From the NCBI GenBank assembly GCA_028023455.1, contig JAQFVV010000005.1, forward strand, positions 17,298,001 to 17,362,000: 64,000 bases of DNA, read 5' to 3'. Below are positions 1,870 to 41,700 of this stretch, in pieces. The DNA is from Epiperipatus broadwayi. Taxonomy: Eukaryota > Animalia > Onychophora. The position numbers were made by a program, and so were the translations under genes. The notes below the pieces were generated by a model. The model saw only the letters and a list, made by a program, of their open reading frames with translations, had not been told where the DNA came from and did not search any database. Position 1 is the stretch's first letter. The number at the start of each line of letters is the position of its first letter.

Positions 1870-3100
1870 CTACAGTAAAATATACACAACGGATATTAAA
1901 GTTATGTTTGAAAAAGTCAAAAATACTGTCTAAAGCTGATGAAACTATATGAAACAGCTTCAAAGGAGCAGCTTTAGGCAGTGAGGAGGAAGTCGTCAGA
2001 GTTCGGGAGGTAAACCAGACATAATCAAAAGTTCCACAACATGAAGGAATTTGGGTAGTTACGTTTTGAATGAAATACATATAAAAACATTTACAAAGGA
2101 ATAAATACACTGCAGAGTGATGGAGAAGCATAAGATAGAATACACTTGAGAAAAAGACAACAGAAAGGACAGCAGATAAAATAAAACATTATGTTAAACA
2201 ATTTTTAATTAAGACCGGTTCACATCTACAAAAATATTGGTGACTTGATTAAAGATGATACCTTTTAGCATTTATGACTAAGAAAACTAAAAAATGATTA
2301 AGATATACATTATTCAGTGATCAAAATACTTATATGTTTTTTTCTTTCTTATGTTTTCCATATTTGATAAATAATTGCATGGTTAATTTTTTTTCCAAAA
2401 TTTGCTTTTGAATTACACACAAATCATTTAAAGTTTAAACTTATTAATGTAGCAATTAATTCTAAATATATTATTACAGTAATTCACAAGTCAGATTTGT
2501 AAAATTTGTAAAAAAAACATTTTTAACAAATTTGTAAGCAATGTCCACTTTCTTAGGCCATATTTTATATGATCAATAGAATGGCACTGTTATGGAAAAG
2601 TGATCCATTGTTTGCAAGTTTATTAAAAAATGATTCTTTAGGAATATAACTTGTAAATTATTGCAGTAACATTTTGCATAATTGCTCTGTAAATAAGTCT
2701 GTATTTTTTGCATTATATATTTAACCACAATAATTAATTTATGGTTTATTAAAAGATCATATAGATTTACACATTTCATTAAATATCTTCCATATAACTA
2801 CTATTCATACATAAGCTAATATATATATATGCGCTGTTTGTACAGATAATGAAGCTAGAATGTATATATTTACAAGCGAAATTTTAATTTACTAAAATAT
2901 AAACTATTAAATTAAAGCACTACTTAAGTTTTTAAAAAATCATTATATAAAGTATAAAATTATAACAAAATATCACCGAATCTTCTAGTTTAACCAGTAA
3001 GACAAAAGCAAGCTCTCTCCTTTATTGCCATATAGTGTATGCTGAAATAATCAATGATTACCAGATAAATATATTCTACAAATATTTATTTCTTTTCTTC

Positions 3101-12900: not shown

Positions 12901-14498
12901 TCATAAAATATATACATCAAAAGAACTTTCAATTGCATAAATATAACTCTTGCAAGTTTAGCACAATAAATTTCCTAGTAATATATACTGCAAATTTTAT
13001 TCTCCATTTTTTATCTATTCTTTCAACATAACATTACGACTATCAAAATGTACTAATTCATAGTCGAGGAAAGCAGACTGTTCATAATATCACTTTTTAA
13101 TTTTTAACATTTTTGCTTTATTGTATAATAAACAATACTCATTAAGGTATTCTATGAGTGCATACCATAATTCATTGATATACTAAGACAAAAAACACTT
13201 TAATGAATATATAATATTATGTCTTTATTTTTTAGATATTGTACCTTTTGTTTATTACTTAATTTAGATTTAAGATAGGCAAAATAAAGTAAAAAAACAT
13301 TACTTTTCATTTATATGCTTCATATGAATTTTATTACAAAAATTAAAAGGAAGAGAAATTCTTGTTTTAGAGTGTATAATTTTATTAGGACCACATCTAA
13401 AATTTTAATAGTATTATAAATAAAATCGATTTAATATTCTACATTTAGCAAATCCTGTAAGTATTAGAAATAGTCATTTCTATCATATGTATATTTACAA
13501 AAATTTTCATTGTAACACAGAAAATATTTTTATTTTATTTTTTAATTTATTTATTTGATGTTATTTATAATATTATTATATATATTTCAAATTTTTATCA
13601 GTATACTCCTTGTTTCAATTCTACCATATCATAACAGATCATCAGCATAGAAAATCAGACTATCATCTCTTATCATGCATGCATTCGAAAATACTTTACT
13701 TTTCCAAATGAATTAAACATAAACACAGAGAATAATTTAATTTCATATACATAAATACATTTAACACATTCACAATCATATGAACAAAGACATCTGAAAA
13801 AAAGAAATAAACATCAAGATATGCATTTTCTGTTGAGCATATTCAACAGTTGGTTTAGATCATAATCTTTTACATATGTCTTTATCATTTGTTCAGTATT
13901 TATAGATAGCAAATTATTACAGTTTGATTTATAAGTTCTAAACTATCTGCACTCCCAACTCTGACACCAATCACTTCATAAAAATACACCAATGATTACT
14001 ACTAATCATTTATTAAATTAGACCTTATTCCTAGCCCATATATATTTACATAGAGATAGCAACATTTGAATCTCGCCATGTAGACAGTTTGATAATTTTC
14101 ATTACATCATACACATATATATTCATTCCTTAGCATGGACCATTTTTACTCGAGAAAAAAAAAAGATGAAAAATAAACTCCAGTACATGAACAACAAATA
14201 AATATATATATGTATGTGATATTAACAAAGTTCTATTTAAATTTTTATCCTGATAAACATATAGAGTTTAGAAACATATTTTTTTTTTATATTTATAACA
14301 AAGTACCACCAAAAGTCATGGGTCAGCTGCCCTATCACCTATTCAAGTGGATTAATAATAATTTTCTGACCATTCAAAGTAGAGTTCTATGAAAGTCAGA
14401 CCAAAAGTTAGTGCAAAATAATTTAGGATATCCAGACTAGATTTCATTATTATTTCCAGGTTCATAATCAATCAATTGTAACTTTACTATAAATCAGG

Positions 14499-14560
14499 AT
14501 TTAGTGCAGCAATAGAGTGACAGATTAGGGAGCTGAAAGTTCTGGGATTGAAGCTTAACT
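14499..14560 (+). mobile_element. Old SINE-like family head (related copies near 597, 5598 and 54735)
   Basis: Recurrent tt(a/g)(a/g)tgcag....gag/gaa motif followed by agctgaa; similarity judged by eye. Confidence 0.35.
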
Positions 14561-14708
14561 TGTCACTTATGGGGCTTGAAGATCACATGATCTTTAGCCA
14601 CCCTAATATATTGCCACTAGTTCTGAAGAGGTGTTCAATGACTTTTGGCAACATACCACATAGACAATAACATTATATATTGTTATTAATTAAAAATGGC
14701 AACATTAC

Positions 14709-14819
14709 CTTGGCAGTGGTAATGTCTGCTGTTGAAACTACTGGAGTTTGCAATGGGAGGGCTTGTCCAGGAGTGGGAGTACTGTAAGGTGCCCCAGAGT
14801 TATAACCTACGCTAGTAAC
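14709..14819 (-). CDS. Host gene coding exon, 111 nt, VTSVGYNSGAPYSTPTPGQALPLQTPVVSTADITTAK
   Basis: poly-T tacag|GTTACT...GCCAAG|gtaatg; 37 codons, phase 0. Confidence 0.85.
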
Positions 14820-15362
14820 CTGTAAAAAAAAAAAAAATTAAAAATGAATGTTTTAATAAATAAAATAAAAGAAACTATTATTAATAAATACTGATGAGAG
14901 ATTAGTTTTTATACAATAAAAGATTGGGCCATTTAAAAGAAAAAAAAGTACTGTTTTATTATCATGCTGAAACTGCTTGATAGCATTGTTTCTAGGGAAC
15001 ACACATAAATATAATGTTACCGGGTCCATCACCTTATTTGTGAAATAATAAGAAGAATAATTGTACGGGTTAACGTAATTAATTTATTTTCCTTAATAAA
15101 TTACTTAATATATATATATATATGTGCTCTGCGCACATATATATATTAATTGATTTCAAACGCTAATGAAGTAAAGCCTTAACTATTTAATAAATTACTG
15201 TAATTATTTTTGAAAAACAAAAACAAGTTATAATCACGTAACTTGATATCGCTTGTATTTATGATCATTAGATGGCGTTTTATCAAAACCACTGAACAAA
15301 GCGTATATTTGTTTACATAAACGACAAAAGAGTCAGAATTCACTATCTCTTTTGTTTGCCCA

Positions 15363-15409
15363 CCCTCAGATCAGCTGATTTCAAGCTAATTTGCTATCAT
15401 CAGTGAAGG
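15363..15409 (-). ncRNA. Type I hammerhead ribozyme motif, mirror copy in the left arm
   Basis: Exact reverse complement of 15993-16039; same sense as the host pre-mRNA. Confidence 0.85.
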
Positions 15410-15992
15410 ATAGAGCTAGAAACTAGATCTAAACACTGACTCCAAGTGTTTATGCAAAAAGTTTCTATCAGTTTGCAAGCATGAATTTTTCAGACCGGTA
15501 AAGTCTTCAAACTCAGCCTAATAAGCCAGATAGCTATATGGGTCTGATCTCAGTTCAGTTTCACCACATAGTCAAAGCCTCTGCAATATATATCATTGCA
15601 AAAACCTTTAAAGGTACATTTATGAAAAACAAAAACAAGTTATAATCATGTAACTTGATATCATTGTATTTATGTAAACAAATATACGCTTTGTTCGGTG
15701 GTTTTGGTAAAACGCCATCTATTGATCATAAATACAAGCGATATCAAGTTACGTGATTATAACTTGCTTTTGCTTTTCATAAATGTACCTTTAAAGGTTT
15801 TTGCAATGATATATATTGCAGAGGCTTTGACTATGTGGTGAAACTGAACTGAGATCAGACCCATGTAGCTATCTGGCTTGTTAGGCTGAGTTTGAAGACT
15901 TTACCGGTCTGAAAAATTCATGCTTGCAAACTGATAGAAAATTTTTGCATAAACACATGGAGTCAGTGTTTAGATCTAGTTTCTAGCTCTAT

Positions 15993-16039
15993 CCTTCACT
16001 GATGATAGCAAATTAGCTTGAAATCAGCTGATCTGAGGG
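15993..16039 (+). ncRNA. Type I hammerhead ribozyme motif
   Basis: CCTTCA-CTGATGA-T-AGC-aaatta-GCT-T-GAAA-TCAGCTGA-TC^TGAGGG. Stem I CCTTCA/TGAGGG, intact CUGAUGA and GAAA core, palindromic stem III ATCAGCTGAT, predicted cleavage after C16033. Confidence 0.85.
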
Positions 16040-19000
16040 TGGGCAAACGAAAGAGATAGTGAATTCTGACTCTTTTGTCGTTTATGTAAACAAATATACG
16101 CTTTGTTCGGTGGTTTTGGTAAAATGCCATCTATTGTAATTATTTTTACAATTTCTTTTTGTCTCTGAATATAACTACGAGAAATTTTTTACACTCGGAT
16201 ATTTTATTATACAGGTTAACGTAATTCATTGATTGATTTCCTTAATAAATTACTGTCAGATTTATTCGATTAACAATTTTATGATGATAAATTTAAATCT
16301 TTAACACGTGCCTACAAATATGCCTTTTCATATCTGCAAGAATTAAAACTTATCAATTAACAGACATTATTGCAAATATTCTATTCTAGTAGAATTCCCC
16401 AATATACGCCAGCGGTCTGCATTGGGAAAATCCCCCCCCCCCCCGCAAACTTTAAAAAGTCTACTTCATTGCTTGACAGACAACTAACTACATCATGATG
16501 GAAGAAATGAGAATGCTTTAATTACCGAACTGTATATGACTCTCTTTTTTTGGTCATTTTTGACTAAAGTATGGTGGATAATATTGATGGCACACCTATT
16601 AATAACGATTAATAATTTTCCAACTCGATTTTTTTTTTTTATGATTAAGAAATGTATTTTTTTTACAATTTCTTTTTGTTTCTGGATATAACTACGAGAA
16701 ATTTTACAGTCAGACATTTTCGCAAACCGTGACTGTTTTCGGGAGAACAGTGAAATTATGGTTTCCCCTAATCTTTTCTAACTATTTATACCTTACATGT
16801 TGAGTTTGGAAGTGGTGTAATGGGCTTATAATTATTACTTTTTAATATTACATTAGGTAAGTTGTACCATAATTACTTTTAAATGCAAATTGCAATAGTT
16901 CTGCAAACTTTAAATCAATCCACTCTGAAATGGTACAGTAGCGAAGTGTTAACATTGCTAAAAGATAGTATTGTGGGAACTCGCACAAACTGCACAAGAC
17001 AAAGCAAGCCGTTAGTTACAACAGAAAAAAAAAGTCTGTGGCTATTTGGTTTGACTGCGGCCCACTAAATGGCATATTTATATGCGTTTTGATGGGATCA
17101 ACGCCATCAAGCGGTTTCAACAGGCTAATAGAACAGTACCTGGATGGGATCATCACCATCAAATAATAGAACAGTACCGAAAAGAATGCAAGTATGATTG
17201 ACAGATTTCGATATTCAGGTTTGAAGAAAAAAAAAAGATGAATAAACAAACTTAATTCAGAAGAATTGACAATGGATAAATTTATGACATTTATTAAAAA
17301 AAGCAGCTTAAATATATTTTTAGAATAAAAAGAATTAACAGTACTGTAGATAACTTGCTAAGAAATAAAAAGTTTTGCAAAATGATTTAAGATTACATAT
17401 AAGATTGTCTTAAATTCATATATGTTTCTTAGATGTTTAGAGAAAAAAAATCAAAAATGAGTAGTAGTTGCTCTGTTTGATTTGATTTATTGATAACGTG
17501 ATCAATTCAAAATCTAAAAAGTCCTTGAATTGAAAGAAAATAATTAAATAGTTTATTGCTTGGAAATTCATAAGATGTTTAAATGATAGAACTGAAAACA
17601 AGCAGAGTTTGACACTACTACTACTACCCTAAACCATGCAGGTCCTTGGATTGCAATGTCATTATATCAGTCTGATGCTTCGATGTCATGACTTCTTCAA
17701 CAATGAAACATTTGATGTCCTGCTTGGTTTGGTTGCAGTAGTGGAATGAAAGATTCTGTAACATAAGATCAACAGACTGCATCTAGTTCTATTATTTTCA
17801 GTGTTTGAAATTCTTATAAACTCTTGAGCAATAAATCATTGGACTATTTTTTAAAAATCAGTTGATTGCTTATTATTATTAATTTTTCTGTGAGATTTAC
17901 GTTGAATTTAAAAAAAAGGAAAATATTAATGAATAGATTATGAAATACAAAAATTAATTAAAATTGTAGATAAGCAGAGGTGGGGAGGATATATACTGAA
18001 AAATAAAATAATAGATAGACTTAAGTGGACATGTTTGTATATTAATAGAATTGTAGACTATGTTAGATTAGAATAATCTAGTGTCAGGTAACTTCAAATG
18101 TAAGCAATAGTTATGATTATATATATATGCATACATATAAAACATGAACTAAAAAACTCTAGTAAGAATATCTGGGGGTGATAGTTTGGGAACTAGTTTT
18201 TTGGAAAGTTGCAACCAATACATTCTCTCCCCTCCAAACATGCAACATATTAGTGTTAACGTATTGTCAGAGTTTTAGAGAAGGCAGTTGCTGATTGGTA
18301 TAATTTTATTATATAGCAATTATTATCCAATGTTAAATGCAGTAATAAAAATAAAAATGGAAGATTTAAAGAAAGATGCAAAGATCTTAATTATGGGAAT
18401 ATTTATAAGAATAGAAGTAAATATGAAAAATGTGTAGATAAGAAAATATGCAAATGTTTTATCAGAAATTTACTAAAGATACAAAATTTTTATTATAAGA
18501 ATTGTTAAAAAATATTCAGACTTCTACAATAATTATTTAATTTGAAATTGTCAAAATTTATATCTAAATCAAAATAATTCACAAATAATTTTTGAAAAAA
18601 AAAACGGCATATAATTAAGATTATTTTGTGACTTATTTTAATTCTTTGAATTTAATATTAAAATAAATATCTTAAAAAAAATTCACTTCTTTGCACTTTT
18701 CACATTGTTTTTTATTTAATTATCTGGCACTTTTGACTATCTAGCAGACTTTTTCAGAATTTTAAAATATAACTGCATTACTAACATATAGTAATCTAAG
18801 GAAGTGGAGAGTGATATAAAATAATGTATATATGGCATATACATTCAAAAGCATATAATTTCTTTTAAGCCAAATCTATCATCACTTTGAATTCATTTTC
18901 CAATAATTTATTATCTTGACTTCTGAAGTGCTAAACTGATATCATAACAGATCTATTAAATTCTTATCAGGTTGTGGAGATTATAAATATCGGTTTTATC

Positions 19001-24345: not shown

Positions 24346-25443
24346 TGGTGAAATGTCTGTGGGTTTAAAACTGTATATGTAAATAAAAGATTATTTATTT
24401 TTGTAAATAAGCACGAATTTCTTTATTTTAATAACATTCACTTTATTGGAGAAAATTATTCTAGAAATTCACTTAAGAGATCATCCTAAAATTATAGATT
24501 AAATTAGAATAGAATTTGTATGCAAATAAAGCTTGATGAATAAAAATTAAATCGTATATGTATATTTACCCCCCCCCCCGATAAATGAAGAAAAGAGAGG
24601 AAGCAGCTAAAATGGACTAGTAGACCGACTAGCAGCGACTCTAGTGGCAAATGGGAAGCGGCTACTTGTTTGTGAATAGAAAAGGTTATTAACAGCGAAG
24701 GATAATTAACTGAAGCTTAACCAAACTGCAAGAGACAAGTTGGGAACTGAGATGGTTAATAAATAATGCATCAATTGTGTGTAGCAATGTAAGCACTAAT
24801 ATTGCAAAATTTTACTAGTTTTACTCTATTCAGAAATAATATATACTTATTTGTATTTCAATAAACATTTGATTTGAAAGCACAAAGATTATTCCTGGTG
24901 TGAAAGAAGACTATTTTCGCCTGAGGAAAATAAATAGCATATGAATATTAATGGACTATTACCTTTTTATATTGTTTTTATCACATTATTATTGTTATTA
25001 AATACATCTTTTTCGAAGTATAGTATTTATTTATTTATTGCTTTGAGAGAAGAATTTGTATAAATGGAGAAAAACAAAATGTATGTTAACATGCTCTCCT
25101 CACATAAAATATAAAAATATTGATATACATCTGCAATCACTTGAGTGTTTATATGACAATAATGTAATAATAATAAGTGTATAAAAGAAGAACAAGTAAA
25201 ACGTTAGATATCTTGGAATGATGATAAATAAACCTTTTGAAAATATCAATAAAAATACTAATTAATAAATTTAGATAATTTATAACAATATTCTACAAAA
25301 TCAAAGATATTTTTCTTTTAAATATTCTTATTAAAACAGGCAAAACTCACTATATGTATGCTAAACACAGCAAGCTAGAGTAATCTATGGATGCCAGAAG
25401 GCTTGTGCATAAAATCCCCATCTAGTGCTCTCAGATCCAAGGC

Positions 25444-25485
25444 TCCTCACTGACGAAGGCCACAAGCCAGAAACTAGTCTGGGGA
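25444..25485 (+). ncRNA. Type I hammerhead ribozyme motif, copy 1
   Basis: TCCTCA-CTGACGA-A-GGC-cacaa-GCC-A-GAAA-CTAG-TC^TGGGGA. Stem I TCCTCA/TGGGGA, extended by TCCAA/TTGGA; palindromic stem III ACTAGT; GUC cleavage triplet. Confidence 0.8.
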
Positions 25486-25501
25486 TATTGGATAAGTAGG
25501 C

Positions 25502-25543
25502 TCCTCACTGACGAAGGCCACAAGCCAGAAACTAGTCTGGGGA
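25502..25543 (+). ncRNA. Type I hammerhead ribozyme motif, copy 2
   Basis: Identical to copy 1 over the motif, 58 bp downstream. Confidence 0.8.
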
Positions 25544-28513
25544 TATTGGATGAGTAGGCACTAGATGGGGATTTTATGCACAAGCCTTCTGGCATCCATA
25601 GATTACTCTAGCTTGCTGTGTGTGGCATACGTATAGTGAGTTTTGCCTGTTTTAACAACAGTTATACACAAGCATAAGAGATGGTGGACATGTGATGCTT
25701 ATTGGCTTAAATATTCTTATTGTTATATATATAAATCTTTATGTGAATCTTTATTGAGATATGGAATAACGTTTTTTGGTTTTGCAAGCTTTTCTAATAT
25801 GAATAGATTAGCATTACTGCAAAAAAAAAAAAAATCTAATAGAAGAAAAATATATCAATAAAGAAAAAAGTGTACACAAAAAACAATATTTCATTATTCA
25901 ATCAACTTCTGGATTATATAATTATAGAGAAAAAAAATTTTGATAGTATTTTCAAAAAACCTTACATAAAACAATTTGAAATGTGTCTAAGGAAAACAGG
26001 TATATACATAGTTTCAAAATATTGTAATAAATATGGAACTAGAGTAAGAAATCATTGTTTCTAAATTATTTAATAATTTACCTATAAAATTAAAAAGCGT
26101 ACAACTTTATAAAAAACAAAAAAATATATTAAAGAGGGGAAAAATTAGTATATAAAAAATATATGAATACCTAATGTTAAATAATCAATATTTTTATTAT
26201 ATAATTAATATATTATTGAAATGTAATTTATTGTTATTATTATTAGCTTATCTTATATTATGTTTAAAATTTTATGCAAATACCTATAATATTATAAAAA
26301 TATTCTTTTACAAAAGGCAACTAGGGCTTAGTAGGAGAAGAATGCAATCTATATTTGTGTAAATATATTTTGAATTGTATTCAAATGAATTAATCTAATG
26401 AATGTATTTATTTTAATAAACAATATATTAATATTAATAATAATTTAGCTCCCTGACTGGTTTTCAGAGATCCTAGGTGCAGCAATGACAGGATTCAACA
26501 GGATAACTACTGCAAATAATAGAATATGACAACATTAAGTTCTGCAAAACGTGAATTCGATAAAACTGACATAGACTCATGGAAAAGTTATGTAGAACAT
26601 GTTGAGTATTATAAGTTTATAAATAAGGTAGAAGATGAGCATCACAAAATGTCAACCCTTCTCTATTTTGCAAGGTAAAAAACAGCTTGCAAATAGACTT
26701 ACTGGTCCCAAATATCCAGAGGAACTTCCATATAAAGAAGTTGTAGAAATTTTAAATGGATATTTTATTCTGAGAGTATCAAAATAGGTAGCGGCCAAAA
26801 TTGAGAAACTGAAAACAATTATCACAAGAAAAATATGTGGACTCTAAGAAAGTAGCTAAACACTGTGATTTTGGTCTGGAAATAAACGATGTATTATTGG
26901 AACAGTTCATATATGGCATTAAAGAATGATAATTTCTGAAATGTATTGCTGAGTGATCCTAACCTAAGTTATGAAAGAGCTGTGGAGAAATGTGTCACAT
27001 AAGAAGCTTTACAAAATAATGCAATGGAGTTTATAGAGTCACAAGAGTCAGGAAAAATTTCACACATAAAACAAAATGTAACTGGAATATCTATTAATTA
27101 TCAGTAAAATGTACGTTTTAAATTAATACTAAAATTTATGTTTATTAAAAGTATTATGTAAAACTAACTACATAATAAAGTGGAAATAAATTATAACATT
27201 AATTTAATAATGAGAACAGACTAAAAAGTAAAATCTGATTACATAGGAATTCAATTGGCAATAATTAATTAATAATTGAATTCTAGAAGGATCTAATGTT
27301 TTAAAAAACCTTAATAGATAATAAAATACTTTCTACCTGGAAAATGATGAAACAGATAGATTACTCCAGAAAACAAAAGAGAAAGAAAACTATTTAAGCA
27401 GGGGGGAAAAAAAAGAAAGCCATGTCCTTTTTCTTCTCCCCTCATGTATTCGCATCATTGGGTTATGCATTGATGTGAAGCAGTGAAAGAAACCAGCGGG
27501 GATTTCTTTCCAGACCCAGGATCTTGACCCCTGAAGGTACTTAGGCTGACTAGGGATCAAACAGATAATCCTAATCTTATTATAATCTATATGTGCCTCA
27601 AGGGCTCACAAAAGTAATGACATTTGCCAGAATATTAGGTAAATAGTGGCTTTAATTTAAGTATTAAATGTATTATTAAGCAAGAGACTAATACTTCCTA
27701 GAAAGAGTTTAAGGAGGTGCAGAGATGGAATTGAATTTATGTGTATTCATATTGTAATCTATGTATAGCGTATAACTAATATATATATTGAAGCAATCAG
27801 TGTGTACGCACACACAGAGCTTCATGTTAGTTGTTAGAAATAGTATATATCTAGAGATTTTTAAAGATCAAATATCTAATTTTCATTTTTTTCATTTGTT
27901 TTTTTATTAAAAAGAATAATATACAGATGCATGTGTGTGTTGATGAATGAGATGGCTCATATATATATATATTTATCTTGTTTTATTGAAATGCATTTTT
28001 TTATATATATTTAGAAAGGAAAATATATTTCCTTTGTCTTATATATTTTTCCTAAAAGAAAATTCTTTCTTTGCAAATAACACTTTTTATGGTTCTGTTT
28101 TTTTTTTTTGAAACATTCATAGTTGCATGGAAGTGTTAGTTATTTTCTCATCTTTAAAGGCCATTAAAAATGCAATTAAAATTTTCATACCTTGATGGGA
28201 TTATTGCCAACTGATTTAAATTAAAGATCAATCATTTTCATTTCTAACAAAGGCAGTTATAATATAGGTGTAAAAAATATAGGATTAAACTGAAGGCTTT
28301 GCTGAGTAAAAGTTTTCATATAAATACTGGGCTAATTTTTCTAGTAGGGCAATCAAAGAATCAGAGTTGTTGGCAGTGAAAAAAAAAAGTTTTTTTAAAA
28401 AGTAAAAAAAGTTTTTAATAAGTTAAAAGTAAAATCAGAAGAGAAGAGAAGAAGAATAAAAGTAAAAAATCACTCTCTAATAGACCAATTGACTATATTT
28501 AAGCTGAGGATAG

Positions 28514-29760: not shown

Positions 29761-32729
29761 AGCGAACAAATAGTGCTCGATGTCAGAATAATAAATGTAA
29801 AAGTGATGATGGAGATAGACAGTGGGGCAGGGCTATCCATTCTGTCAATAAAAGACTGGGAGAAAATTAACACCATATCCAAGTCAAAACTAAATTTGGA
29901 TAAGACTAATGTTATAGCCACTGATGTAATTGAAACCAATGTTCAAATATGTGGAAAAATTTCGGTCCCAGTAAAATTAAATAACAAAAGCAAAATTTTG
30001 CCTTTGTACATAGTTAAAAAGAACATAAACCCTTACTGGGCCGAAACTGGTTCCGCCCACTGGGCATATCCATACAAGTGATTAAAACTGTAAAATTAAA
30101 AAATGTAGTGTGACAGAAATTCCCAAGGATATTTGAGGGAAAAATAGGAATACTGAAGATAGACACAGTAGACATAGAACTTACTGATGAGGCTCAACCG
30201 GTAGCAAGCAAACCCAGGAAGGTTCCATTCACACTAAGAGCAAAGGTCGAAGAAAGTCTGTCAGCCCTGGTAAAGGTAGGAGTGTTGTCGCCAGTGGAAA
30301 GTTCAGATTGGGCCACTCCAAATGTGATAGTCACAAAGCCAGACAGGAGTTTATGGATCTGTGGGGACTACAGGTTTACTGTAAACCAATACTTAAAAAA
30401 AAGTGTGTATCCGGTCCCGAATGACACAGAAATAGTGGCATCACTCCAGGAAGCTACACTTTTCACTAAGATAGATTTGAGGTCAGCTTTTCATCAAATC
30501 CCAGTCACAGACAGGTCTGCAAAAATACTAACTCTCTGTACTTATGTTGGTCTTTTCCAGTGCAATAAGCTACCATATGGAATCACGACAGACCCCAATA
30601 TATTCCAAGCTAAAATAGATCAAATAACGCGGAATATGGAGAGGGTGATCCCCTACCTGGATGACCTACTGATTTATGCTAAATCAGAAACCGAACTGAA
30701 GGAACGCGTGCTTACCATATGCGACCAATTGGAAAAAGTGGGAATCAGGATAAATACCACTAAGAGCATTTGGTCCATGAGAGAAATAAAGTTTCTGGGA
30801 CATATTATTGATCAAAATGGAAAACGTCCTAATCCCGAGAAGGTTGACACTATAAAAAACGCTCCAGTACTAAGAAATGTAAAAGACTTACAAGCATTTC
30901 TGGGAATGCTAACTTTCTACGAAACGTTTTTGAAGGGAAAAGGCACAACAGCTAAAACCCCTTTATGCCTTATTACACAAGGATCAGTGCTGGAAATGGA
31001 AGGCTGAATACCAAGCTGTTTTCCAGGCAACCAAGGATTTACCGTCATCTGAAAGTCTGTTGATGCATTACCAAGGTAATCAAGAAGTTATAGTAATTGC
31101 AGATGCTTCGGAATATGGGGTTGGAGCTGTCATATCATACTTGATAAATGGACAAGAATGCCCGATAGCCTATGCCTTCCATACCCTGTCACCCGTGGAA
31201 ACTAACTATAGCCAGTTGGACAAAGAATCCCTCGCTATCATTTTCACGGTAAAGAAATTTCATCAGTACATCTATGGACGAAATTTCACCTTATGCACTG
31301 ATCATCGCCCACTATTAGACATATTAGGTAAGACCAAAAAAACACCTGAAAATAGCAGCCAGAGAATGCTAAGATGGACTAATATACTGGTAGCATACAA
31401 TTATACACTAGTACACAAGCCGGGAAGGGACATACCTCATGCTGATGCCCTATCGCGTCTACCACTGAAGGCGGATAGACCACATGAATTCGTGGAAGTA
31501 AATTTATTGGAAGTGGTGAAGTAGAACAATACTGTATATAGTGCAAAAATAGCAGAGTGGACAGCTAGTGATCAGGGATGTTGCCAAAGGAGGACTTGGA
31601 TAAAGGAAGGATGGCCAAACCACCGTCCTGATAATCTTCATATAGCTATTGGAATGAATCCTTTCTACCTGTAATGGTCGTATCACCAGGACAGATCGTG
31701 TATTCGTACCGATGGAAGGTCTTGCTCAGATCTTAAGACTACTCCATGCCGGACACCTGAGAATAGTGAAAATGAAAGCTTTTGTCGCGTTCATATGTGT
31801 GGTGGCCAGAATTGACCAAGAGATCGAAGAGATGGTGAGACAGTGCCACAGTTGCCAAGCCGAGGCAAACCGGCCAAAAAAAAACGCTGAGCTCTTGGAT
31901 AGAACCAAACAAACCCTGGGAACGGATCCACATTGATTATGCCGGGCCTATAGAGGGACAAATGGTTTTGGTGGTGGAGGATGCATACATCAATTGGGTG
32001 GAATACTGGTTGGTAAGGTCGGCAAACTCGACATGTACCAAAAGGGCTCTCCAAGAGATGTTTACCATGCATGGATACCCCAAGATATTGGTATCGGATA
32101 ATGGAACAAGCTTTGCCTCCACCAGTTTTAGAGACTTCCTGACAGAAAGAGGGATACGTCACATTTTTGCACCGACATACCACCCTGAATCAAATGGTTT
32201 GGCAGAGAATGCGGTCCAGTGTTTAAAAAAGGACCTGAAGAAAACAAGAAAGACCAGGATGAAGGAGGCATTGCTGGAAATCATGTTCTTCCAACATTTT
32301 TTGCCAAGGTCTAAAGCTGGTAAATCACCGGCCGAACTGTTATTCAACAGAACATGTCGCACACACATGTCAACCGTTTTACCCCAAAAGGAAAGAACTA
32401 AGAGAGAACCGGAAAGTGATCCCCATAAACATATGAAAAGGTTCAAAAGAAATGATCCAGTCTGGGTGCGTGATATACTAAGGAAGAGATGGCTACCTGG
32501 AACCATCATAAGTGCACAATCAAGGACAATTTACCAAATAAGACTAGAGAATGGTACATCTGTCCATAAACACATAGACCACTTAAGGAGAAGATCTCCG
32601 TGTGCTCGAACGAATATCCCAGAACCTGTTGGAAATGCCAGTCAATGGGACATCTTACCTAAAGAAGATAAGAAAGTATTGCCACAAATAACACAGGAAG
32701 AGTTTTGCCAAAACAAACCAGATGGATAG
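29761..32729 (+). pseudogene. Gypsy A pol (protease, RT, RNase H, integrase), disrupted
   Basis: EIDSGA; WATPNVIVTKPD..ICGDYR, YLDD; ADASEYGVGAV, YSQLDKESLA, TDHRPL; HAGH..CHSC, SDNGTSF, YHPESNGLAEN. Confidence 0.95.
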
Positions 32730-38745: not shown

Positions 38746-41700
38746 ATATAATTGTGTGTTTTTAGCAAAGAAACAACGTCACCAAGCGACTGGCCTGGAG
38801 TATCGATTAGTACCCATTTGGCATGTCAACAGCCCCAAATATATTTCAGGCAAAAACTGATACACTAATGAAGGGATTTGAGGGCATCATACCCTATTTT
38901 GACAATATATTAGTAACAGTGGACTCGAATAAAAGTTTATATCAAAAATTGATAAAGATATGCACAAGTTAAATAATTTCAGACTAAAACTAAATGCCCA
39001 AAAAAGTGTATGAAATATTAAAGAATCTCTAGAAAAGGGGGTTTCCTTCACCTGAAAAAGTAGAAGTCGTAGAAAAGATGGAAAAATCAAAGAATGCCAA
39101 AGAACTTCAGGCATTTTTAAGCCTAATTAACTGCCATTTCTATAGAATAAATCAAAAGTAGCAAAACTCCTTTTTTGAGCTGCTAAAAAAAATCATAAGT
39201 GACAATGATTAAAAACCTATGGCAATTGTAGATGCACTAAAGGCCTACTGTCATCAGAAAAATTATTGGGCCATTTTGACAATAATCAAGAAGTAACTTT
39301 AGCCACAGACAGGTCAGAATGGGAGGTAAGGAATGGTTCTATGTCATCTATGCTATAAGGGAGAATGTCCCATTGCCTATGAGTCCAGAAAACTCTCCAA
39401 AGCCGAGAAAAACACAGCCAGATAGATAGAAGCTATGGCAATAATATTTGAACCAGAGAAATTTCACCAACATATATTCAGCAGAGCATTTAAAATAATA
39501 GATCATAAGCCATTATTAGGTATATTGGCAAGCAATAGACTAGCTCTTGACCATTTGAGTCTTAGGATGCTAAGACGGAAAAATATACCGGCATCATATG
39601 ATTATCAGCTGGTCTATAAGAAGGAAAAAAAGATACAGCTTGTGGATGTGTTGTCCAGAAACCCAGAAAGACGGGAAATCCAGATGAATGCTATAGAGAT
39701 AAATTCTATAAATGCTATGCAGTCTGTGATACTTAACAGTAATACAGTGGAAAAATGGATGAGGGAAGATAAAGGATACCAGCTGCTAAAGTGCTGGATT
39801 AGGAATGGCTGGTCAGCAAAGAAAACAATGCATGGCACTGCTTTATGGACTAATAGAAATAATTTATTGTTTAGTAAAGGGTGTATATTAATGGGAGACA
39901 GGGTACACAAAGGTCACCCTGGAGTAGTGCGCACAAAAGCTTTAGTGTGTAGCTATGTCTGGTGGCCAAGAATAGCAATAGACATAGAGAATTATATTAA
40001 AAAATGTTCAGCTTGTCAACCACAAAGAAACATGAAACTGAAGGAATATATACCATAGTCTAAAACAAATAACCAATGGCAGAGACTTCACATGAACCAT
40101 GCAAATGCTATTTATGACAAAATACTACTAATGTTGACAGATTCATATTCAAAATGGGCAGAATACCATATTGTTAAAAATAAGAATACTAATGAAACAA
40201 TAAAAATACTAAAAGTGACTTTCTCATGTCACAGATTGCCAGAAGTAATGGTCACTGATAATGGCACTGGATTTACAGGTCAAGAGATAAAAGAATATTT
40301 TAAAAAAAATGGAAACAGACACATATGTGCACCCCCCTATCATACGGAATTGAATGACCTCACTGAGAAGGCCATTCAAACAAAAAATCAATAGGAAAAT
40401 CTTTGAGTAGCAACATGCAAAATGTTTTATAAGATGCACTGCTGCATTAACACTCAATGCCATCAACAACTACAGACAAATAGCCAGCGGAGTTGCTGAT
40501 TGCATTAAATTAGACATGTTAATGCCAAAGAAGAATTAATATTTCCAACATAAAATGAAAAAAAACCATTATGAATTAGTGAAGAAGTATGGATACACAA
40601 CTCGCTGCAAAAGAAATGGATCAAGAGTATTATGGGAAGGTCATTCAGACTAATAGTAACCATTGAAAATAAAAATTGTAAAGAATATAATAGACACATA
40701 AATCATATTTATCACTGAACCACAGAAGCGACACTTTATCCAACGATAATAATACCAGATAATGAAGAATCAGCAAAACAGATTGGAAAACAAAAAAGTG
40801 AAGATAAATCCGGAGGCTGAAAGACAAGACAATCTACAACCCCAACTTCAAAGTAAAGCTGAAATAAAAGTAGAGATTGAACCCAGGGAAAGGCAAAAAT
40901 AACCCAGATCTAAAAAAATTACAGGATTATATATAAATGGAAAAATTTCTGAAGTAAGCGGAGGATTGGAATATCTATTAATTACCAGTAAAATGCACAT
41001 TTTAAATTAATACTAAAATTTAAATTTACTAAAACTATTGTGTAAAACTAGCTACATAATAAAGTGGAGATAAATTAAAACATTAATTGAATAATGAGAA
41101 TAAACTAAAAAGTAAAATCTGATTATGTTAGAATTCAATTGGCAATAACAAATTAACAATAGAATTCTATAAGGATCTAATATTTTAAAAAACCTTAATA
41201 GATAATAAAATACCTTCCATCTGGATAATAATGAGATAGATAGATTACTCCAGAAAACAAAAGAGAAAGAAAACTATTTAAGCAGGGAAAAAAGAAAGCT
41301 ATATTCTTTTTCTTCCTCCCTCATGTGTTCACATCATTAGGTTATGCACTGATGTGAAGCAGAGAAAGAAACCAGTGGAGATTTGTTTCCAGACCCAGGA
41401 CCTTGTCTCCTGAAGGTACTCAAGCTGACAAGGATCAAACAGATCACCCCAGATCTTATTATAATTTATATGCACCTCAAAGGCTCACAGAAGTAAAGAC
41501 ATTTTCCAGAATATTAAGTAAATAGTGGCTTTAATTAAGTACTAAGTGTATGATTAAGCAAGGGTCTAACTTCCCAGAAAGAGTCTAAAAAACTACAGAG
41601 AGTAGAATTGAATTTATGTGTATTCATATTGTAATCTATGTATAGCATATAACTATAAATGTATATACATTATTATGTTATTAAAATTTGAGAAAAGTAA

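Follow-up and report, generated by a model that had tools for sequence, protein, structure and literature searches.

The 64,000-nucleotide stretch of the Epiperipatus broadwayi genome analysed here (assembly GCA_028023455.1, contig JAQFVV010000005.1, positions 17,298,001 to 17,362,000 of the forward strand; "the window") carries a 923-bp non-coding insert at 15212-16134, which lies between two copies of a 13-bp target-site duplication (TSD). The insert is a fold-back of a 412-nt repeat unit, and each of its two inverted arms holds one type I hammerhead ribozyme motif. An earlier interpretation made from the letters alone (the sequence-only reading) had taken it for a retrozyme-like element mobilised by a Penelope-like element (PLE). 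We confirm the observation and find the interpretation partly supported; the kind of element and its link to PLEs are already published. The features of the locus are as follows.

15199-15211, no strand: left copy of the TSD (tgtaattattttt), the last T of which is common to the TSD and to the element's terminal TGAAAAAC
15211-15675, minus strand: left arm, ~1.14 units; its outer end is the canonical family 3′ end, unit position 111 (...TTTTTCA)
15211-15261, minus strand: 51-nt tail, unit positions 61-111, present at the left end of the insertion only
15363-15409, minus strand: type I hammerhead motif of the left arm (CUGAUGA from 15403, C17 = 15369)
15670-15675, no strand: microhomology tttatg joining the two 5′-truncated arms (the arms overlap at L001 1501-1506)
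15669-16136, plus strand: right arm, ~1.14 units, stopping at unit position 56
15726-15784, plus strand: putative internal priming module, consisting of TCATAAAT repeats that flank a hairpin
15993-16039, plus strand: type I hammerhead motif of the right arm, with a predicted cut after C16033
16135-16147, no strand: right copy of the 13-bp TSD

Anatomy of the insertion and its target site

The 412-nt period was read from two pairs of direct repeats (15206-15250 versus 15618-15662, and 15669-15724 versus 16081-16136), and unit positions are numbered from window 15669. The inverted arms (15266-15662 and 15740-16136) are 97% complementary over 397 nt. As the sequence-only reading had noticed, each arm exceeds one unit and crosses the unit junction seamlessly, and the two are joined at the 6-nt tttatg. 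Carrying a single ribozyme motif on each strand, the window copy cannot free a monomer on its own, and as a source it is probably inert. No open reading frame (ORF) of more than 54 amino acids was found in the insertion region, nor was a tRNA or a tRNA-like head. The GC content of the unit is 36%, and that of the window ~28%; the genome assembly comprises 5.6 Gb.

The 13-mer tgtaattattttt is present at both flanks (15199-15211 and 16135-16147), and the right flank belongs to a separate repeat. This host repeat, at window 15060-15211 and 16135-16400, has >1,400 candidate places in the genome at 79-90% identity. In its other copies, sequence resembling 16206-16256 (ending ...aataaattactgt) runs straight into sequence from 16135. 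The matches that define this uninterrupted layout are adjacent and overlapping, and one read joint (15105>16138) agrees with them; the empty-site argument is based on these match coordinates and on that one joint. Since the 13-mer is single at uninterrupted sites, both the insertion and the duplication are real, and the layout first proposed for the locus is borne out. On the left side of the insertion, two copies of ttaataaattact (15093-15105 and 15187-15199) enclose 81 nt that contain a (TA)n palindrome (15107-15151); this looks like a local duplication or a small insertion within the host repeat.

The hammerhead motif

On the plus strand, helix I (CCUUCA/UGAGGG, 6 bp) pairs 15993-15998 with 16034-16039 and encloses the core segments CUGAUGA (15999-16005) and GAAA (16020-16023) and the cleavage dinucleotide U16032-C16033, where C17 = 16033. 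Helix II (AGC-AAAUUA-GCU) has only 3 bp and is closed by a U·U mismatch, whilst helix III (AUC-AGCU-GAU) has 3 bp and a 4-nt palindromic loop. The motif therefore has the core order of a type I hammerhead, with three helices around the core. A structural descriptor matched four places in the 64-kb window, two in this element and two in another element at 25450/25508, and it matched none in 60 composition-matched simulated windows; the motif is not a chance occurrence. All core positions are kept in 60 of 66 family monomers, and the majority form of the family is that of the window.

The other element (window 25318-25721) is a second, unrelated hammerhead element, in which two tandem minimal motifs stand 58 nt apart between inverted arms (CUGACGA-A-GGC..GCC-A-GAAACUAGUC; C17 at 25479 and 25537; A·A at 10.1/11.1). 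A third hammerhead family is found at L037:1169-1202 (plus strand) and L053:6500-6467 (minus strand), with the sequence ACCAA-CUGAUGA-U-UGCUG..UAGCA-U-GAAAUAUGUAUAU-UGGU and U·U at 10.1/11.1; it lies near, not inside, PLE copies. A symmetric 10.1/11.1 mismatch in two unrelated motifs of the same genome (A·A at 25450, U·U in L037/L053) suggests a local style of hammerhead.

Copies, ends and targets across the genome

A first-look search of the 5.6-Gb assembly with the unit returned >2,100 candidate places, and the 40 candidates that were scored yielded 180 matches, mostly 92-98% identical. We mapped the unit on 27 independent loci out of these >2,000 places; the loci were picked for a full-length match, which favours longer arms. 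They comprise 21 fold-backs and six single arms, one of which (L004) has a 19-nt inverted stub. At all 27, either (TA)n or unrelated flanking sequence closes off the repeat on each side within 0.5-1.7 kb, and no ORF is present. The family has no long terminal repeat (LTR), primer-binding site or polypurine tract, and the TSDs of the window copy and of L011 exceed 4 bp.

The sequence-only reading had noted that the arms start and stop at different positions in the unit, and expected permuted breakpoints. The outer positions are not arbitrary: 47 of the 48 outer ends fall at two fixed 3′ sites, 51 nt apart and on either side of a hairpin: 22 lie after ...TTGATCA (unit position 60), 25 after ...TTTTTCA (position 111), and the remaining one is truncated. 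The window copy is a normal family member. On the left it ends precisely at position 111; on the right it stops 4 nt before position 60, where a TG microhomology joined it to an off-target AT-rich site. In every fold-back with both ends readable (20/20), the ends are heterotypic, one of each type, an outcome with a chance of about 1e-6 under random pairing. Consequently, all 20 classifiable fold-backs carry the 51-nt tail at one end only.

Inner ends, by contrast with the fixed outer ones, are scattered across the unit, reflecting variable 5′ truncation. Arm lengths vary independently from 38 to 913 nt, arms hold 0.1-2.4 units, and half of the arms (22/44) contain two hammerhead motifs exactly or nearly 412 nt apart. 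At the inner junctions the arms are joined by microhomology, with an average overlap of 3.3 nt; the overlap is at least 2 nt in 14 of the 21 fold-backs. A (TA)≥3 run (median 12 nt) adjoins 42 of the 48 outer ends, and (GT)n adjoins one. Copies in non-TA sites have clean duplications of 10-13 bp, namely 13 bp in the window copy and 10-11 bp in L011.

The 5′ ends (inner and single-arm, L001-L030) are non-uniform and concentrate in three stretches of the unit, about positions 199-242, 54-75 and 375-408. In the RNA, the third stretch is 10-40 nt downstream of the point where the ribozyme would cut. Such clusters may mark sites of polymerase pausing or the 5′ ends of RNAs.

RNA fold and the two 3′ ends

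The monomer L002:1454-1865, which runs from ribozyme site to ribozyme site, has a predicted sense fold of -120.6 kcal/mol (z = -5.6 against dinucleotide shuffles), compared with -86.6 kcal/mol (z = -3.0) for its antisense, and the predicted fold joins the two ends of the monomer via an extension of helix I. This predicted sense-specific compactness, likewise a feature of published retrozyme RNAs, speaks for the importance of the RNA in the orientation of the ribozyme.

The one-sided tail of 51 nt corresponds to a 43-nt hairpin (15734-15776) between 8-nt direct repeats, TCATAAAT, at 15726-15733 and 15777-15784. The two 3′ ends of the family fall after the TCA of each repeat. In the predicted monomer fold both repeats are single-stranded and the hairpin is formed. 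The sole perfect (AU)4 run of the unit, at about positions 138-146, is inside a 15-bp stem and never serves as an end; since it is never used, we rejected priming by (TA)n microhomology alone. Two T>C changes are confined to the right arm, one at window 15767 (unit position 99) and the other at 15773 (unit position 105). They fall within the 3′ half of the hairpin, 6 nt from each other, and each converts a G·U pair into G-C; elsewhere in the family they are nearly absent (3/69 and 1/67, respectively).

Templates and age

Arms pass through both the unit junction and the ribozyme site, and in L002 the latter is crossed twice. It follows that the template either was circular or exceeded one cleaved monomer in length, and the proposal that reverse transcription had run past the junction holds for the ribozyme site as well. 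Unit position 221 (A/G) is the one balanced non-CpG polymorphism. It agrees within 22 of 23 loci (within and between arms), whereas agreement between loci is ~49%; therefore, by this one marker, both arms of an insertion derive from a single type of template.

The arms of the window copy differ by ~3%. Each difference is confined to a single arm, and CpG sites account for five of them, a pattern that fits arms that were identical at insertion and have decayed by ~1.7% since. Monomer identity is 94.7% within arms, 94.6% between arms and 94.5% between loci, which looks like one old burst followed by decay. We had considered a higher likeness of monomers within loci as a sign of a circular template, but there was no such signal (94.7% within arms versus 94.5% between loci). 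Conservation at CpG sites is 0.745, compared with 0.977 at other sites. The sequence-only reading had suggested a young family. Given a pairwise identity of ~94.5%, heavy CpG decay and window arms ~3% apart, the family is not especially young. It also occurs in two related organisms.

Penelope-like elements in the same genome

PLE insertions are known for heavy 5′ truncation, partial tandems, an inverted 5′-truncated copy beside the 5′ end, a tail of 30-40 bp that is often at one end only, and a bias towards microsatellites; in the Hydra clade, insertion is into (TA)n and hammerheads are present (PMC8557442). The 412-nt family displays every one of the insertion traits in this list: truncation, tandems, an inverted partner, a one-sided tail and the microsatellite bias.

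PLEs are plentiful in the genome. A six-frame search gave >10,000 first-look GIY-YIG places, and PLE open frames of up to 901 amino acids have a GIY-YIG domain at their end. Homologues of the 800-amino-acid ORF of L047 have RVT_1 and GIY-YIG among their precomputed domains. Searching four whole PLE proteins against Pfam at E ≤ 5 returned neither RVT_1 nor GIY-YIG, nor any other family, a silence probably due to their extreme K/N/I-rich composition. The assignment of a reverse transcriptase (RT) with GIY-YIG is thus taken from the precomputed domains of homologues and from the six-frame GIY-YIG matches, which do pass the cut-off. The PLE ORFs in L043-L052 (e.g., L043:5436-8138) are 514-901 amino acids long and K/N/I-rich, and this composition hides the genes from routine annotation.

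The 3′ ends of L047 and L048 adjoin (TA)n, 13 and ~35 nt past a minimal hammerhead with a U3-A8 core (UUGAAAA...GAAACGUU). In L047 this motif is at 2940-2976 (minus strand), with matching 3′ ends in L048 and L050, all of them autonomous PLE copies; the adjoining run is (TA)9 in L047 and (TA)5 in L048, whilst the L050 motif has no adjoining (TA)n. A descriptor with the canonical core found no hammerhead in full-length PLE loci, and one with a relaxed core gave mostly false positives in AT-rich ORFs; the U3-A8 motifs at PLE 3′ ends were spotted by eye only. At L053:3668-5755, a PLE 3′ fragment is arranged head to head in arms of ~1,012 nt that are 100% complementary, with a 61-nt spacer. It looks like a very recent PLE twin insertion. 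The window also contains LTR-retrotransposon gene fragments (30282-32729 and 39435-40058), with RVT_1, rve integrase core and integrase zinc-binding domains.

Proposed origin of the insertion

We consider it probable that the insertion is a copy of a high-copy, non-coding 412-nt retroelement of the animal non-LTR retrozyme type, which was inserted by PLE-type target-primed reverse transcription. A non-autonomous, hammerhead-bearing element of this type is what the sequence-only reading had supposed from one copy, and the evidence now extends across the family. We infer the RNA intermediate, its circularity, its self-cleavage and the part played by a PLE as the machinery. The hammerhead motif and the sense-biased predicted fold together suggest an RNA intermediate that would be processed and compact, as in published retrozymes.

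The insertion would begin with a staggered double nick in an AT-rich target, usually a short (TA)n run (TGTAATTATTTTT at the window site). Both free 3′-OH ends would then prime complementary DNA (cDNA) on the element RNA, each at one of the two single-stranded UCA|UAAAU sites that flank the 43-nt hairpin. Each cDNA would copy a template of more than one unit (an uncleaved multimer, or a circle copied repeatedly), pass the ribozyme site and stop at a variable point. The two 5′-truncated cDNAs would be joined head to head by a few bases of microhomology, and gap repair would leave the 13-bp duplication.

Two other ways of making the inverted arms were rejected. Snap-back, in which one cDNA copies itself, predicts that one type of arm is always at least 51 nt shorter; the position-60 arm is longer in 12 loci and shorter in eight. 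In the second model, two polymerases follow each other around a single circle and there is a switch to the displaced strand; the arm-length inequalities that it predicts fail for the window copy. Because arm length is independent of end type, neither the snap-back nor the follow-the-leader model is tenable.

Several observations weigh against the retrozyme interpretation. First, U·U takes the place of the conserved G10.1-C11.1 pair of hammerheads in the window copy and likewise in the majority sequence of the family, and Rfam searches found no hammerhead (RF00163), either across the window at the gathering score or, over 14000-17500, at E ≤ 10. The only Rfam matches were chance microRNA-like ones on a (TA)n palindrome. 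To judge from the sequence, the U·U at 10.1/11.1 and the 3-bp helix II may render cleavage weak or absent. The intact type I core described by the sequence-only reading and the position of its predicted cut stand, but the context of the core is not canonical. Second, the PLE hammerheads that we saw have a different core (U3-A8) and lack helix III, and a blastn comparison (word size 7) of the unit with 28 PLE-derived loci, ten of which have ORFs of 514-901 amino acids, gave nothing significant. These 28 loci, found by GIY-YIG match, are a tiny sample of the >10,000 places, and the sole real match, in L053, is an unrelated nearby fragment of the 412-nt family itself. The insertion anatomy is of the PLE target-primed type, in support of the earlier suggestion of borrowed PLE machinery, but none of the sampled PLE-derived loci aligns with the unit. 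Third, monomers within a locus are no more alike than those from different loci, and so give no independent proof that the arms were identical at insertion. Fourth, the two candidate RNA runs (short assembled contigs) cover the flanks as well as the element, show no pile-ups of starts or ends and are indistinguishable from low-coverage DNA. Finally, the simple model of two primed strands does not explain the heterotypic-end rule.

Some of these points would suit an alternative that keeps the same PLE mobilisation but regards the hammerhead as a decayed or non-functional relic. Here the templates would be linear read-through transcripts of genomic tandems, with neither self-cleavage nor a circle, and the element would be a passenger of the short interspersed element (SINE) type. 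The loss of G10.1-C11.1, the short helix II, the silence of Rfam and the uninformative RNA runs all favour it. So does the crossing of the ribozyme site by cDNAs, up to twice, as in L002; moreover, PLE minimal hammerheads are poor at cleavage in vitro (PMC4209133). Against it, the motif is kept in 60 of 66 monomers, the intact form is the family majority, and the predicted sense fold is 34 kcal/mol stronger than the antisense. In addition, no arm of more than ~2.4 units was seen among the scored places, and linear templates would shorten with every generation, whereas copying of a circle would regenerate arms of more than one unit. We regard this alternative as possible, although rather unlikely.

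It is very improbable that the unit is a truncated pseudo-LTR, or the 3′ end, of an autonomous PLE, with all copies being dead-on-arrival fragments. The idea draws on the heavy 5′ truncation of PLE insertions and the hammerheads of their pseudo-LTRs (PMC8557442, PMC4209133), and on a 2026 preprint that relates vertebrate retrozymes to PLE pseudo-LTRs (10.64898/2026.07.22.740005). A position directly 3′ of a PLE ORF is the arrangement that the sequence-only reading had named beforehand as speaking against it; the unit adjoins a PLE ORF in none of the 27 loci, where unrelated flanks or (TA)n bound the repeat and no ORF is present. Its arms continue into up to 2.4 head-to-tail 412-nt units and never into coding sequence, and the blastn comparison with the 28 PLE-derived loci revealed no similarity, so that this explanation is largely refuted.

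Also very improbable is a DNA-level origin (a fold-back transposon or miniature inverted-repeat transposable element, a local palindrome or an assembly artefact). Long inverted arms with a flanking duplication do resemble fold-back elements, palindromes are a known assembly hazard, and the reads for the locus are short assembled contigs, none spanning the element. However, the inner junction differs in every locus, arm lengths vary independently, and the outer ends, offset by 51 nt, do not form inverted repeats. Moreover, some copies have a single arm, the duplications are of variable length, and 21 separate loci on large contigs share this architecture.

Relation to known systems

Metazoan non-LTR retrozymes have been described (PMC7229834, Cervera & de la Peña 2020; PMC7761336, de la Peña et al. 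2020), and their origin from PLEs was proposed in both papers and in the 2026 preprint (10.64898/2026.07.22.740005). Like them, the family is a non-coding, AT-rich repeat of a few hundred nucleotides (within their low-GC range of ~150-450 bp), in head-to-tail order with one type I hammerhead motif per monomer, TSDs of >4 bp, a compact predicted RNA, thousands of copies and co-resident PLEs, the proposed mobilisers. Unlike them, it showed no long tandem arrays in the copies that we saw: an arm has ~2.4 units at most, and most of these short arrays form head-to-head pairs. Its hammerhead, moreover, lacks the G10.1-C11.1 pair. For published retrozyme families expression and circular RNA have been demonstrated, whereas a circular RNA of the 412-nt family is putative.

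The likeness to PLE insertions, especially those of the Hydra clade (Craig, Yushenova, Rodriguez & Arkhipova 2021, PMC8557442), extends to truncation, tandems, the inverted copy, the one-end tail and the use of (TA)n, as well as to a hammerhead upstream of the 3′ end. However, the 412-nt unit lacks an ORF for RT/GIY-YIG and resembles none of the sampled PLEs in sequence, and its tail measures 51 nt, as opposed to 30-40 bp, and can here be defined as a hairpin between 8-nt repeats. The hammerheads of PLEs and other metazoan elements typically have a short helix III with a palindromic loop, and they are presumed to function in dimeric form (PMC4209133, Cervera & de la Peña 2014). The family resembles these minimal, dimeric forms in its type I order, 6-bp helix I and short helix III with the palindromic loop AUCAGCUGAU, which could extend helix III to 10 bp in a dimer. 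It departs from them at helix II, which is 6-8 bp in PLE minimal hammerheads and 3 bp here, and in having a symmetric U·U, where PLE hammerheads have the highly conserved G10.1-C11.1 pair and a bulge 5′ of helix II (PMC4209133).

The proposed mechanism also recalls the twin priming of L1 elements. In that process, reportedly described by Ostertag and Kazazian in 2001, both nicked strands are said to prime reverse transcription, giving inverted segments, a join at microhomology and one target duplication. The shared features would be the priming by both target strands and the inverted arms joined by microhomology within one duplication. Unlike in L1 twin priming, both arms of the family start at defined internal sites of a repetitive or circular template, fully overlap in sequence and lack poly(A).

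In the retrozyme literature that we searched, neither the twin-arm architecture nor (TA)n targeting is described for retrozymes. The word "inverted" is absent from the 2020 retrozyme paper, and the 2014 PLE paper mentions paired motifs on opposite strands (PMC4209133). A twin-arm architecture in retrozymes is nevertheless an expected corollary of PLE mobilisation.

What the family contributes

Animal retrozymes and their suspected dependence on PLEs are already published. The earlier link between the two was mostly one of co-occurrence and shared ribozyme type, and lately of sequence relatedness in vertebrates; to this the 412-nt family adds insertion-site anatomy as evidence, and it supports the published model of PLE mobilisation. 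What goes slightly beyond the literature is that the tail is exactly defined and that the ends are strictly heterotypic. For annotation of this genome, the family accounts for a repeat with >2,000 candidate places, and its fold-backs are real insertions, not misassemblies.

That two putative priming sites are strictly paired across a hairpin gives a modest, testable hint at how PLE integration leaves its odd structures. To our knowledge, there is so far no worked-out explanation for the one-sided tail of PLEs. If the pairing reflects a fixed geometry, a two-headed RT/endonuclease complex might grip one RNA hairpin and prime on both of its flanks, a notion that we put forward as speculation and judge unlikely. 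If it were true, the family would be a sequence-level model of PLE integration and would provide a compact non-coding substrate for its reconstitution in vitro.

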